NCBI GenBank assembly: GCA_965113315.1
Contig: OZ220363.1
DNA length: 64,000 bases
Source of the DNA: Podarcis vaucheri
Taxonomy: Eukaryota
Strand: one strand, 5' to 3'
In this document: positions 6,761 to 15,777 of the stretch, piece by piece
Numbering within the stretch: the stretch's first letter is position 1
How the letters are laid out: each line of letters starts with the position of its first letter
The notes under the pieces: generated by a model
What the model saw: only the letters and a program-made list of their open reading frames with translations
What the model was told of the DNA's origin: nothing
The model's database searches: none
Translations under genes and position numbers: made by a program

Positions 6761-8775
6761 GTCCCCTTTTCTTTCTTGAGCTGACAGGGGTGCCAACTTG
6801 AATAAAATATCGTGGGGACCAGGTAAGCCCCACCCCACATAATCGATCACATGACGCATTTCCCACATGCTATTTGAATGGCGATGCTCGTCAACTTTGT
6901 GGGGCCCCGGCCCCCTCAAATATTTTATTGTGGGGTCCGAAGCCCCCAGGAGTTGGCTTCTGTGAGAGCTGTATCTCTTGTTGATTCAGCTCCCATTTTC
7001 CCTTGTCTTGCACTTCACAGCTTTCATGTGCCTGTGTGTATCAGAAATAGAACAAGCCATATGTTTTTGTGGGGATCAGGAAGGCTTTCGCTGTCCTGTT
7101 TCCATACTCTTATAAGTGGACATATTTCTTTCCATTATTGTTTACTTTTTCTGTGAATTTTGCTTTTTAAAAAAGAAAAACAACCCCGGGTCTTATTTGC
7201 TTCTTACAATTCTGTGTTTAATAAGTAACACATACAAGCAAGAATGACAGATCAGCTGTTTTCTTAAAGAAGTCAAGAAATAGGAGCCCATCTGCAATGA
7301 AGAAATAAATTATGACTAGCTTTGGGAAAAAACATTGAAACATACACTATGAACAAGCTGGCAGATCTTATGTAGAATTGCTGGTGAGCTTCAGCAGATG
7401 GCTGGAGTGCATTTTGAATGCATTAATTTGTATGCACTGTATCAATTGCTATATAGACAAAGAGCAGCTGCATCTTATTGAAGCAGATACTGCAGAAATA
7501 TATATTTTTTAATTGCATACTTAGGAGATTCTATTTATACAGCTGCCAAAATGTCTTTGAATGGAAAAGAGACAGATGTGAAGAAATGGAGGTCTAATTC
7601 AAACTGCCCCAAGTAAGGGTCTATCATTTTTGGCGAGCTTTACTGGCAGAGTCAAAAACTGTAGTTGCCAGCCCACTTTTCTATGAGCCAAGCCCCTTTC
7701 AAGCCTTTCCCAAGGGAAGAACTAGTGGAAAGAATGCCAGGTTGCTGTCACTGCTTGAAAATGTCCCAAACCTTCAAGCAACAAATCAAGCACCCTCCCA
7801 AGGGAAGGGCCTGAGGGTAATGTGGTCAAGGCTTGCAAGCCTTTCACACAGTGGTGCACAATGTACTCCACCTGCCTTTCCCAAGAGAAGGGTGGATGGG
7901 GAGAGTAGCCAGTTGGGTGCCACTGTTTGAATGTCCCCCAAGTGCCTTCAGGCCAGTGGCATAGCTAGCCACTTGGGCACCATGCGAGCAGGGCGAGCAG
8001 GGCACAAAGCCAGAATCCCAGCGCCTGAGGTGTTACGTTCTGCTCAGGCGTCCTGCAGGCCCGCGTTGCTCTTTCAAGCAGCGCAGAGCCTGCAGGAAGT
8101 CTGCCCAATGCTTCCCCCTCAGCTGGAGGGTAATTGAGAGGGAGGCAGTGGGCAGAGGCCAGTCCCACAGTGCTTTTTGGGGCGTCATGGTGTCTGCAGG
8201 CGCCCAAGACACCATGGCTCAGGTTCGCTGTGGGCCCAGCACTGCTCGTGGGGCCAGCTCGTGCCAGTTGCATCCTTCTCAGCTGCCCTCCGGCGGCTGT
8301 GGGGGATGCAGCAGCTTGGCACCCTGCAAGCACAGCCCTGGTCCGCACTGTGCTCTGGGGTGCCTGGATTTGGGTGTCACCTTGGGCTCCAGCACTCAAC
8401 ACAAATACACACCCCAGCTTCTGGCAAGGACACTGGGAAATACATGGAAAAGATGAAAGCACTAAAAACTGTTATTTTGGCAACCCAAAAACCTGGGTGT
8501 TAGTGATATAGACATTTCCCCTGGAAAAAATTAATTCCAGCTTTGAAACTGCCTTATTTGATAGATAATTGCTAATTCATTTTATAAAGCAAAGCAATGC
8601 ATTTTTATGGCCTTTCTGACACCAATGGGACTAAAATTCTAAAACTGCTGATCTCTTCCTAAGTCTATCTCCATCTTCTTGTCATCTTTGCTGGCATGAC
8701 ACAGACACCATTTTGCAGAGCTGGTGGTTGCTGTGTTGAGATTGGGCCTTGATCCAAGGCAATTGGGATATTACG

Positions 8776-8793
8776 ATATATACATATATACAT

Positions 8794-8831
<38 letters not shown>
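8776..8831. repeat. (AT)n / ATAC microsatellite
   Basis: Direct reading. Confidence 0.95.
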
Positions 8832-8834
<3 letters not shown>

Positions 8835-8920
8835 GGTTTTGGTATCTTCGGGTGTCTTCCCGTGTAAGAGTAGGGGTGTCTGGGCGACGTTTCGACGAGG
8901 TCTCACTCGTCATCTTTAGA
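8832..8920 (-). mobile_element. Penelope-like element terminal fragment with a truncated minimal hammerhead ribozyme
   Basis: Minus strand reads ctAAAGA-t-GACGAG-tgagac-CTCGTC-GAAA-CGTC-gccc: helix II, GAAA, palindromic ACGU helix III and a GUC cleavage triplet. It runs into an (AT)n tract. Confidence 0.7.
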
Positions 8921-9150
8921 GCCAATGAGATATCAGCATATGCACAAAACCCTCCACCTTTATCACTTGAGCAGTGATGAAAGCCACCACCAATATTAAT
9001 TGCCCATCCTCTCTCAATGGCCAGTTTCCCTGCCATTATTGTTCCTCCAGTTTGAGTTCTCAGGGGCCTCAGCACCTTTCTCTGAACAAGGAAATTGGGC
9101 AGAAAAAGAACAGGTGGGATTTCTGTAATTGTCGCCACAACAAAGGACCA
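8914..9150 (-). pseudogene. HDAC11: Processed (intronless) HDAC11 fragment, 79 codons
   Basis: Encodes WSFVVATITEIPPVLFLPNFLVQRKVLRPLRTQTGGTIMAGKLAIERGWAINIGGGFHHCSSDKGGGFCAYADISLALK, the class IV HDAC core including the GGGFHH motif. No introns, N-terminus or C-terminus. Confidence 0.92.
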
Positions 9151-9256
9151 CTGAATGAACTTGAGTTGAAAGACTGGGAGAAACTTGGTGGCTCGGAAAC
9201 CCTGTGGTTGCTTCAATTGCTCCCAAGGTTTTTGTTTTGCTTATATATATGTATGT

Positions 9257-9560
9257 ATTGTCCAGTAGCACCTTAGAGACCAACTGGGTTTGTTCTTGGT
9301 ATAAGCTTTCATGTGCATGCACACTTCTGGATATATGGACTCTGTTCTGAAACTGTATGCCATCAGTGATCCTAGCTACATAAGTGACACCACAAACTTT
9401 CTGAGGAAAATACAATCTTTGAACAGGTATCTGAAGAAGTGTGCATGCACATGAAAGCTTATACCAAGAACAAACTTAGTTGGTCTCTAAGGTGCTACTG
9501 GACAATTTTTTTATATATATTTTGAGTGCGTCAGACCAACACAGTTACCTACCTGAATCT
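9257..9560. mobile_element. Penelope-type non-autonomous element with 72-bp inverted repeats and a + strand minimal hammerhead (9426-9465)
   Basis: Arms 9257-9328 and 9435-9506 are reverse complements with 2 mismatches. GGTAT-CTGAAGA-a-GTGTGCatGCACAT-GAAAGCTT-ATACC has type I hammerhead topology. Confidence 0.8.
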
Positions 9561-12500
9561 AGAGGAATGGAGTATTACGTTGTACTGATATTGCAGCCAT
9601 TGCACTTGAGTCTCAGCGGTGCTGTTCCATTATTAGATCTTGCTTTAAATTAGATGAAGTACAGAAATTACAATTTCTATAACAGCCCTTTACTGTTGAG
9701 TACTGCCAAAGTACCTGTTATAAGTAATTACATTTTACTATCATTCACTTCATTGGTTTTATTTACTATTTTAAGAAAGCAGAATAAAACTGCTTGGTAC
9801 TAGAATCATTATAGCTGCTGACTAAACTGTGTCCTATTCCCCTGCTCTGCTCAGTGCAAAGTGATTATTTTAAAACATAGCTTCCAGTTTATATTTTGCT
9901 GAATGGAGTAGGGAGATAAAGCTTCAGATTCTTTTTTGGCCTTAGTCTTATTGATGACAAAATTCTGTAAATGAAGAAGCACTGTTCTGGGAAATTGATT
10001 TGCATCACAAAATAGTCCTGGGCACCCCCTTCCTCCAAGCTTTACATAATGCCATGTTAGCATCATGATAATGTATTAATACATTAAACATTTCAGTGTT
10101 GCTGTTCAGGGTGAAGGGGATTTATATTATTAATTGGGTGAGTAGACAACCTGCTTTGTGAATGTAGCAGTGATTTCAAAAACACAAACCTGTTTTTAAA
10201 CCTTGCATTACAGTTTCAATACCTTGACTTGCATCTTCACCTTCCATGGGTTTTCATGTGAGTTGGGTATAATTCCATCATGTCACTGGAAAATCTTGCA
10301 TTATTTTGTTATGAAAATACTCTCAGATATGTGGAGAGGTGACTAGAACTGAAAGTAGTACGTATAGCAGCCACGTTCTCCCACTCTCCCCTTCCTACTT
10401 TCTTATTAGTTAAGTAGCTCAGCATTTCAGTTACTGTAATTTATCATGAGAATTGTCAGAGAATTTAAATATGCTTTAAAAATTTCTTGAGTAGTTAATG
10501 CGGTTTTATTTTTAAAATGAAATTTCAGAGTGCAAGATGCTATGAGAATTTAAAGACCATCTTAAATGGCTAGAAATTTCTAAAGGTGCTCACACTTCTT
10601 TGCCTTTAAAAATATTGTGTATTGCAGAAAGTGAATAAGCACCAGAATGCTGCTGTTTGTGTGTTGTATGTGTGTGTTTAATTGTATGATGAGCACCCCT
10701 GCTCACAGGTGATCCATCATTCTACTGCTAGACTTGTCAGCTTTGCATTCTTAGGACCCGAGTGTAGTCCTTCCCTTTGAAATTTAATTAGAAATTGCAG
10801 ATTTTCTGATCTTCTCTATTTGAAACACTCCATTCTTTCCCCAAGAATTGCATATTACTTGATTAGATAGTAATTGGAGGGAAATGTAACCCTTTGTGCT
10901 TCTTTAGTTATGACTGCACTGTTATAAGCTGTTGAAGAAATGCAGAGGCTCTGAATGAAAAATGCATTCATTTGAGTATTGCATTTCTGACTGCTCAGTG
11001 AAGGCTAGGCAAATGTGATCTTGATGAATTATACCCTGATGTTAAATGCATTGGCTTGAAGATAAGAGCTCTTTCATGCCGTACACAGCCCGCTACCACT
11101 GTATGGAGCAATAAAGACAAGGTCCAAAGAAGGAATTGTAACTCCAAGCAAACAGTGGAAAGGTACCAGGAAGGCAAAATCAATTGGTAGCTCCTGTGCA
11201 CATGTCCCCAAGCGTTTGGGATTCGCCTGTACCTTTCTGATGCTGTACATTTCAGAAGTGGTGTGCATAGCTTGTTGGGTTTTAGAGACTGTTGTAAATC
11301 ATGGTTTGCCACTAATCATGGTTAGAAGCTTCTAGTTGTGTCACATTTGCCAGGGGCAGGATGAGAACAGGAGTGTGCAAGTCAGCTTCTTGTGGCATAG
11401 TTAGCATTGCATCTACGTAATCCCATTTATTACAATGAGCACTTCTATTTATTCCTTAAGACAAAATTTATGAGATAATTTATGCCTCATCGTGAAAGGA
11501 CATTGTCTGTTATACTAGCAGGCTGTGCATTGTCATCATGATTTATACGGGTTCTGGCACCTCTTTGGTACGTTCTGGCACCTCTGTAGCATTGCAGCAC
11601 GGGGGCACGCTGCTCAGGGCTGCGTGCCAGAGGCTGCGGGTGGCACTGCACTCCATGTTGAGCAACTGAGGCTGTGAGTGGCACAGTCTTTAGCGCAGTG
11701 GCAGTGCAGTGAGCGGGCAAAGAAGAGAGTCCCCCCCCCCCCATGGTCACCAACTTTGGCTGGGCACTCCCCTAAGAAAAGCTCAGCAAGTTCCGGCACC
11801 TCTTTTCCTAGAAGAAAAGCCCTGGGTGGAGACTTTTTTCAATACTAGGAAGCCCAGTATCTTAGGATAAAAAGAGGAACATGTGATACATTTTTTTTCT
11901 GTGGCCTGAATTTGAGTTTCTTTCCTGTTGTGTGCCATAGGTCCATGCATGCACCATCTTGATTGGCAGTCAGAATAAGAAAATTATCAGAAAGCCAAAG
12001 GCAAGAGTTCCTGGTGATAAAGAGTTTCTGCAGCCATAAAGCAAAAGGTAAGTGTTGGTTTAACCCTTCTTTGGATAATATGAAAGCCGTTTGCGGCCTA
12101 CCATCCTAGGAATAGTGTTTATGTTATACATTAAGTCTGCAACTTACACACATTTAACTAGTGTGCATTAAGCTTTACCACTTGGCAAAATAATAAAAAT
12201 AAGTAAAAGGAGATGCACATCTAAGAAAAAAGACTTTGGCAATTGCACCCAATGTGTTTTGACTATACATGGTTTTGGCTTTAGGCACAATTCCTGGAAC
12301 ATAACCCCCAGGTAAGTTGTGGGCTTACTGTTCTTGGTTCAGATGAGAGCATACCATTTGGAGTTTTTACTAAGAAACTTAGTAGTTTTGCTGACAACTC
12401 CCTTCTCATGCAGTTCTAAAACCAATAACTATAAATAACCCCTTCCAGAATAAAGACACCACCCATGGAAGTTAGCTTTTTATGATATTGCTTGACTGAT

Positions 12501-15751: not shown

Positions 15752-15777
15752 AACAACAAAATCACCAATGTCTTCCA
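15752..15777 (+). promoter_or_regulatory. Extensively paired miR-7 site (TDMD trigger) of Cyrano
   Basis: The reverse complement of miR-7-5p (UGGAAGACUAGUGAUUUUGUUGUU) is AACAACAAAATCAC-TA-GTCTTCCA. The sequence reads AACAACAAAATCAC-CAAT-GTCTTCCA: 8mer seed, 14-nt 3' pairing and a central loop. Confidence 0.95.

Follow-up and report, generated by a model that had tools for sequence, protein, structure and literature searches.

A candidate retrocopy of spliced HDAC11 exons joined to a Penelope-type hammerhead repeat in Podarcis vaucheri

In a 64,000-nucleotide stretch of Podarcis vaucheri DNA (NCBI GenBank assembly GCA_965113315.1, contig OZ220363.1; the whole stretch is called the window below), we characterized a minus-strand insert at 8832-9242, roughly 410 bases long, which lies within a lizard (TA)n microsatellite. 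From its 5' to its 3' end, the insert consists of a 92-nt exon-like piece, three consecutive spliced exons of HDAC11, and part of a Penelope-type minimal hammerhead module. Most likely, it is a dead retrocopy of recent origin that has no function in its own right. As to its origin, the account we favor, and consider probable, is that an HDAC11 exon was spliced into a Penelope module lying in an intron, and that the resulting chimeric RNA was then retroposed by Penelope machinery.

The HDAC11 block (9150-8914, minus strand) comprises 237 nt, or 79 uninterrupted HDAC11 codons, drawn from three exons with no introns between them and ending in ...GCT CTA AAG. The query for its identification was a single contiguous stretch of the window. 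The 79 codons matched the Pfam family Hist_deacetyl (E 4.5e-09, profile positions 72-132 of 298), and a word search matched them to vertebrate HDAC11 proteins at E of about 1e-45; Zootoca vivipara HDAC11 isoform X2 was 100% identical, and the Pogona protein 99%. Bacterial deacetylase structures were matched by the same 79-codon protein. A preliminary description of this locus had reported 237 nt of uninterrupted HDAC11 coding sequence here, and both the Pfam and the protein matches support it. With 79 of about 347 residues and a partial deacetylase domain, the block does not amount to a functional HDAC11 copy, and tblastn with three squamate HDAC11 proteins found no other HDAC11 exons in the 64-kb window. 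It is a displaced fragment, not the HDAC11 gene itself.

We placed the exon borders by comparing 120 HDAC11 isoforms and fragments recovered by the word search (a slash within a sequence marks a junction below). Immediately 5' of WSF, the residues with which the block begins, many vertebrate HDAC11 isoforms carry unrelated sequence: Zootoca isoform X2 reads MSRKGT/WSF, Varanus has an alternative N-terminus of 66 aa, and further alternatives occur in Macrotis, Sander and ray isoforms. Past the last codons of the block, ...LA(I/L)K, many isoforms read into V..., the start of a GT intron (VRMLL, VVICV, VKLRK, VRTSP, VCNT, VSTQ), and others jump to GNGHERDF or AIRRKVE. Since isoforms either read through to V... 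or skip past this point, the exon ends after the K codon. Inside the block, isoforms carry insertions at GGTIM/AGK, where they start with V, and at AINI(G)/GGFHH; the border between the middle exon and the next was placed to within 1-2 nt.

Sequencing runs of related lizards were compared with the same region. When the stretch 8400-9700 was sought in public runs, two runs of one organism, A, contained 0.82 and 0.77 of the sampled words, and organisms B-F contained 0.53-0.59. Logan contigs of A, B, C and D were compared with 8500-9700 at 85% likeness. These data are contigs, not raw reads, and the depths given below are sums over contigs, not copy numbers; the best-matching A runs may derive from the assembly's own source sample. 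Three contigs, one of B (1827 nt), one of C (1824 nt) and one of D (870 nt), matched 9033-9153 only, with 0, 1 and 0 differences, respectively, and are, to judge by these matches, the parental WSF...GGTIM exon set within unrelated, intronic sequence. Because they match nothing outside 9033-9153, the WSF exon is assigned to 9150-9034, and the window sequence upstream of it is not its intron. The depth bin 8992-9032, which covers the middle exon and both of its junctions, was empty in B and C, with single-copy contigs in the adjoining bins; in D it held only one piece, which halted at the exon border. Taken together, the isoforms and the relatives' single-exon contigs indicate that the block consists of three consecutive internal HDAC11 exons of about 117, 43 and 77 nt with both ends at exon borders, as had been proposed.

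The sequence 5' of the block turned out differently from the preliminary description, which had the HDAC11 exon following the AG of an intron. Parental WSF-exon contigs cease to match at 9153, so in the parent the WSF exon does not adjoin the 92-nt piece, and 9151-9242 cannot be the end of intron 3. It is instead a separate exon-like piece. A 2881-nt contig of organism C matched 9151-9242 only (contig positions 1364-1455, 1 difference), and the depth of this interval was single-copy in B, C and D. The piece ends in CAG (9151-9153), with the look of a donor side, and it is non-coding: it lacks an ATG and opens on an in-frame stop. We considered whether it could be exon 1 of Zootoca isoform X2 (MSRKGT) and ruled this out, such coding sequence being absent. 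Because several HDAC11 isoforms splice alternative upstream exons onto the WSF exon, we infer that the piece belongs to HDAC11 and is probably an alternative non-coding 5' exon of the parental transcript. Three intronless HDAC11 exons and a fourth, non-contiguous piece, with borders set by isoforms and by relatives' contigs, argue for an origin from cDNA.

The 82 nt that follow the block (8913-8832, numbered from the ATG as +1 to +82) start ATGACGAG-TGAGAC-CTCGTC-GAAACGTC-GCCC and end ...GATACCAAAACCTGC. The ATG (8913-8911), which in hammerhead numbering is A9-U-G10.1, overlaps stem II, a 6-bp hairpin of GACGAG (8911-8906) and CUCGUC (CTCGTC, 8899-8894) closed by a loop at 8905-8900 and followed by GAAACGUC; folding also predicts this stem. 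GAAA lies at 8893-8890, with the ACGU palindrome typical of minimal Penelope hammerheads and with C17, of the GUC triplet, at 8886, and the ribozyme cut is predicted between 8886 and 8885. An AC-rich tail closes the module with ...AAAACCTGC at 8832 (+82). Within the 64-kb window GAAACGTC occurs once, a count that is uninformative alone, as one match is often expected by chance.

The module had been described as a hammerhead, and this stands in part. Helix II, G12-A13-A14 and the GUC cleavage triplet are present, but the core reads CUAAAGA where C3-U4-G5-A6-N7-G8-A9 is expected, the change of G5 to A being contributed by the HDAC11 exon end, and helix I pairing is gone, its 5' strand having been replaced by HDAC11 exon sequence. 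On this anatomy, the hammerhead copy in the window reads as a remnant only. Rfam hammerhead models gave no match in 8000-10000 at E<=10; this negative says little, because the same scan missed a complete minimal motif at 9426-9466. A metagenome pattern scan for the module found none.

In four lizard samples, the 82-nt segment is a very high-copy dispersed repeat. Summed contig depth in bins 8828-8909 was 3.3e5-6.7e5 in run X1 of organism A and 2e4-4e5 in the other three runs, against unique-flank depths of about 44 in X1 and 9-33 in the others; the module is thus thousands-fold deeper than the flanks in all four organisms. The segment makes up the 3' two-thirds of a Penelope-type minimal hammerhead module, in line with the Penelope-type hammerhead of the preliminary description. 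The homology of ordinary module copies ends at 8916, beyond which their loose ends read CAGGCTGGTGCTTTCG on the plus strand and ...CGAAAGCACCAGCCTG, then AAG ATGACGAG, on the minus strand. Ordinary copies carry an intact CUGAAGA core, have CGAAAGCACCAGCCTGAAG upstream of ATGACGAG and read CCTGAAG/ATGACGAG. In run X1, most module copies differ from the window at plus-strand 8872 (A>C) and 8883 (G>T), and none do so in the other three runs; these differences are probably the effect of a few very deep contigs.

At the join of the two parts (8914/8913), the HDAC11 exon end ...GGCTCTAAAG directly abuts the module start ATGACGAGTGAGAC, with no filler bases. The host part stops exactly at the ...LALK exon end, and the next base is the A of the module's ATG. 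As ordinary copies read CCTGAAG/ATG, the host exon replaces the 5' half of the ribozyme right after an AG, which is where the preliminary description had placed the join within the CUGAAGA core. Self-cleavage was ruled out as the origin of the join, because the ribozyme would cut 28 nt downstream of it.

Read on the minus strand, the whole insert runs ...ttcattcag/TGGTCC ... GCTCTAAAG/ATGACGAGtgagacCTCGTCGAAACGTCgccc..., with a short tail to ...aaaacctgc at 8832 and then (AT)n (Table 1). Four splice-type joints lie within it: one between the upstream piece and an exon, two between exons, and one between an exon and the module. Tracts of (AT)n flank it on both sides, and the module's +82 end stands right against one of them. 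The 5' edge falls at 9240-9242, where AA could also be microsatellite and leaves the edge ambiguous; with both ends inside low-complexity microsatellite, a target-site duplication is not definable. The insert has neither poly(A) nor a 3' untranslated region (UTR), and for this reason it is not a LINE-type processed pseudogene: the host part halts where an internal exon ends, with the module next and (AT)n after that. Both the AT-microsatellite site and the lack of an L1-type 3' UTR and poly(A) had been noted previously, and the sequence confirms them. In a self-comparison of the 64-kb window, the tail, the HDAC11 part and the upstream piece each turned up only once.

Table 1. Parts of the insert and of the microsatellite around it, in window positions
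Feature	Position	Strand	Remarks
Upstream exon-like piece	9151-9242	-	92 nt; ends ...TTCATTCAG/
HDAC11 exon (predicted)	9034-9150	-	117 nt; encodes WSFVVATITEIPPVLFLPNFLVQRKVLRPLRTQTGGTIM
HDAC11 middle exon (predicted)	8991-9033	-	about 43 nt; encodes AGKLAIERGWAINI(G)
HDAC11 exon (predicted)	8914-8990	-	about 77 nt; encodes (G)GGFHHCSSDKGGGFCAYADISLALK; ends CTA AAG/
Penelope-type terminal module	8832-8913	-	82 nt; begins ATG
(AT)n/(ATAC)n microsatellite, 3'-side target DNA	8776-8831		~55 nt; all contigs break here
(TA)n/(TATG)n remnant, 5'-side target DNA	9243-9258		from sequence reading

One open reading frame (ORF) on the minus strand traverses the upstream piece, the HDAC11 part and the 82-nt module. 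This frame has 183 codons (8665-9216, minus); coming from the upstream piece, it continues across the HDAC11 exons and enters the frame of the module's ATG (...LALK-MTSETSS...). The host exons and the presumed ORF of the module are therefore in phase, which may be chance, at 1 in 3.

Contig depth also speaks to the number of copies and to their age. The HDAC11 and upstream parts have single-copy depth in B-D and low-copy depth in A, and on these depths we rejected the multi-copy family carrying a gene fragment that the preliminary description had entertained. In A, contigs of run X1 match 9005-9153 and 9151-9242 with no differences, the first of them crossing an exon-exon junction by 29 nt. 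For B and C, no contigs spanning exon junctions are among those listed, although contigs can demonstrate that a sequence is present but not that it is absent. In the unique flanks, only 2-3 of about 440 positions separate B, C and D from A. These differences, at 8623 (C>T), 8627 (G>A, in D only) and 9670 (A>T), look fixed, and they show the four samples, about 0.5% apart, to be very closely related. As the copy departs from the parental exon at 0-1 positions and none of the three related samples yielded a contig across a junction, the data suggest that the retrocopy is recent, in line with the young event proposed earlier, and perhaps specific to A; every contig breaks at (AT)n.

In the account that we consider probable, an HDAC11 transcript would start at, or include, the alternative upstream exon and be spliced normally through the three internal exons. 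Its last donor, ...CTA AAG/gt, would join the AG of the CUGAAG/AUG core in a sense-oriented Penelope module further down the gene. Such a splice would strip away helix I and the 5' core, including G5, and leave an RNA unable to cut itself, while retaining the ATG-proximal region, where the Penelope reverse transcriptase would bind and start internally. The Penelope machinery would nick the (TA)n microsatellite, begin cDNA synthesis at about +82 of the module and extend the cDNA back across the host exons as far as the RNA's 5' end.

Several points weigh against this account. The acceptor would be AAG/, with the rare A at -3; the consensus of ordinary copies has a CAG 7 nt further upstream, and AG/ATG does not stand out as a good splice site. 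Between CTAAAG at the exon end and CTGAAG in the element, 5/6 bases are shared, which a microhomology template switch could use as well. Parental HDAC11 would need to carry a sense Penelope copy downstream of the ...LALK exon. Searches with the module's N-terminal reading linked no reverse-transcriptase gene to it: its 27 aa (MTSETSSKRRPDTPTLTREDTRRYQNL) found no match in a word search over proteins of 100-320 aa only, and phmmer with a 30-aa module query found none among 1.84 billion representatives, the query being short and the region poorly conserved. The match between the +82 end and the +85 site of Poseidon_Ac, an Anolis element compared below, is one of position and of short motifs compared by eye, and among the loose contig ends listed none falls at 8832.

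The strongest competitor, which we nonetheless regard as unlikely, involves no splice between host and element. Here, the reverse transcriptase would start at +82 on an ordinary Penelope RNA, jump at the AAG just past the ATG onto a mature HDAC11 mRNA and copy to its 5' end. Such a template switch accounts no less well for the spliced exons and for the upstream exon, and it dispenses with both the intronic donor copy and the weak AAG acceptor. CTAAAG and CTGAAG share AAG exactly, within their overall match of 5/6 bases. Penelope insertions are also known for complex tandem and inverted structures (PMC11167929, PMC8557442), which, with a fold-back copy next door, suggests that the template is easily changed. 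However, a switch point lying on an exon-exon junction of the mRNA would be a matter of chance: by a rough inference that does not come from the real mRNA, exon ends would account for ~2-3 of the roughly 40-50 AAG sites in such an mRNA, about 5-6%.

We consider it highly improbable that the insert was assembled by two or more independent events, whether an older partial HDAC11 retrocopy followed by a later 5'-truncated Penelope insertion, or trimming by deletion or microsatellite rearrangement, with the exact borders accidental. The microsatellite did take at least one other insertion, the fold-back at 9259-9505, and the insert ends in low-complexity DNA where no target-site duplication can be read. 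However, this history would require a retrocopy truncated exactly at an exon end and an element 5'-truncated exactly after an AG; the join holds no filler bases and no poly(A) remnant, and an intact frame, together with no more than 0-1 differences from the parental exon, points to a single recent event. Least probable of all is an assembly artefact in which HDAC11 cDNA-like sequence, module and microsatellite form a chimera, for example from a cDNA contaminant or collapsed repeats: although none of the contigs listed spans the whole stretch, short-read contigs all breaking at (AT)n, and although the assembly and the best-matching runs may share one source sample, X1 contigs match 9005-9153 and 9151-9242 without difference, one of them across an exon-exon junction, the unique flanks have normal depth, and the microsatellite target and +82 end are biologically coherent, not random.

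Splicing of an HDAC11 exon into a Penelope module, our preferred reading, raises a broader idea that we put forward only tentatively, as possible but doubtful: lacertid Penelope-type hammerhead modules might be mobile exon traps, in which the AG of CUGAAG/AUG, or other acceptors in the terminal repeat, capture host donors and the captured exons are pasted into (TA)n. If true, this would be recurrent, splicing-dependent exon shuffling by a third class of retroelement. The signature to search for would be a host exon end followed by ATGACGAG..., or by a terminal-repeat acceptor, with the end at +82 in (TA)n. Counting this signature across the genome would gauge how frequent such events are and would test, in vivo, the internal-initiation model that comes from in vitro Anolis work.

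The neighborhood of the insert includes a second element. At 9259-9505 lies a fold-back (inverted-duplicate) insertion of another, still more abundant repeat, with arms at 9243-9335 and 9428-9520 that are 89% complementary around a 92-nt spacer; in run X1 its contig depths sum to as much as about 2.8 million. A complete minimal hammerhead, GGTAT-CTGAAGA-AGTGTGCATGCACAT-GAAAGCTT-ATACC, is found in the plus-strand arm (9426-9466), and the core in the other arm is damaged. This fold-back, with its complete minimal hammerhead, shares the (TA)n microsatellite of the HDAC11 insert, which makes the site a repeated target of Penelope-type insertion. An Rfam match to MIR1222 at 9282-9483 (49.5 bits, gathering score 90) reflects the hairpin of the fold-back repeat and not a microRNA gene; likewise, matches to mir-297 and mir-1277 at 8765-8836 reflect the (AT)n microsatellite and not microRNA genes.

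Just below the insert is a GC-rich island (7700-8450, GC 0.51-0.66), and the insert lies a few hundred bases downstream of a likely promoter island of Cyrano. The miR-7 site of Cyrano was found at 15752-15777 on the plus strand, so the HDAC11-Penelope insert, within the locus of this lncRNA, is antisense to Cyrano.

Among the classes of eukaryotic retroelements, Penelope-like elements are the one least understood. Intron-free copies of host genes are familiar from LINE-1, which produces processed pseudogenes, chimeric retrocopies and transductions, the chimeras arising through template switching or read-through. The insert resembles these in being an intron-free copy of a reverse-transcribed host or chimeric RNA, but it has no poly(A) or 3' UTR, starts internally, occupies a (TA)n target and carries a Penelope hammerhead module. 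Exonization, or gene trapping, is a second point of reference: a cryptic acceptor in an intronic transposable element captures an upstream donor. The proposed event would share that step, whereas the trapped transcript here seems to have been copied back by the element's machinery. In a literature search for Penelope-linked retrocopies or chimeric transcripts, we found nothing closer than the movement of host genes in Adineta vaga.

Among Penelope elements themselves, the best comparison is Poseidon_Ac of Anolis carolinensis (Frangieh et al. 2024, PMC11167929). Its ORF opens where hammerhead stem II starts, in the context ...CTGAGG ATGCC...GGGC GAAACGTC^AGG, and the ribozyme cut site lies 25-26 nt past the start codon. 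The protein requires the first 172 nt of the ORF as RNA, and reverse transcription starts internally in an AC-rich stem-loop, at two sites, about +85 and +119, that bound a 34-nt 'tail' (PMC11167929). Penelope targets are AT-rich, with a bias toward (TA)n (PMC11167929, PMC8557442). The window module is like Poseidon_Ac in having its ATG at the start of stem II with CUGA-R-GA before it (in ordinary copies intact), in GAAACGTC with the cut site and in the AT-rich target; its end at +82 also falls near the ~+85 site, and the last 30 nt look similar, both by position and by eye only. Its stem II and tail sequences differ, placing it in another family. It also retains +1 to +82 only, with the terminal repeat and 5' core replaced by host exons, and our searches tied no ORF, reverse transcriptase or GIY-YIG domain to it.

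In Adineta vaga, Penelope elements move host genes in trans; these genes keep their introns and have a terminal repeat on either side (Arkhipova et al. 2013, PMC3846280; PMC8557442), and they show a clear target duplication (PMC3846280). Penelope-like elements have been called unusual for carrying introns when they move host genes. Exon trapping of the kind we suggest would, if true, be the opposite of this intron-carrying movement, with splicing trapping the host exons and retroposition following. As in A. vaga, host sequence in the window has been relocated together with Penelope terminal sequences; unlike there, the host part is spliced, the element lies on its 3' side only, and the two meet at a splice-type junction.

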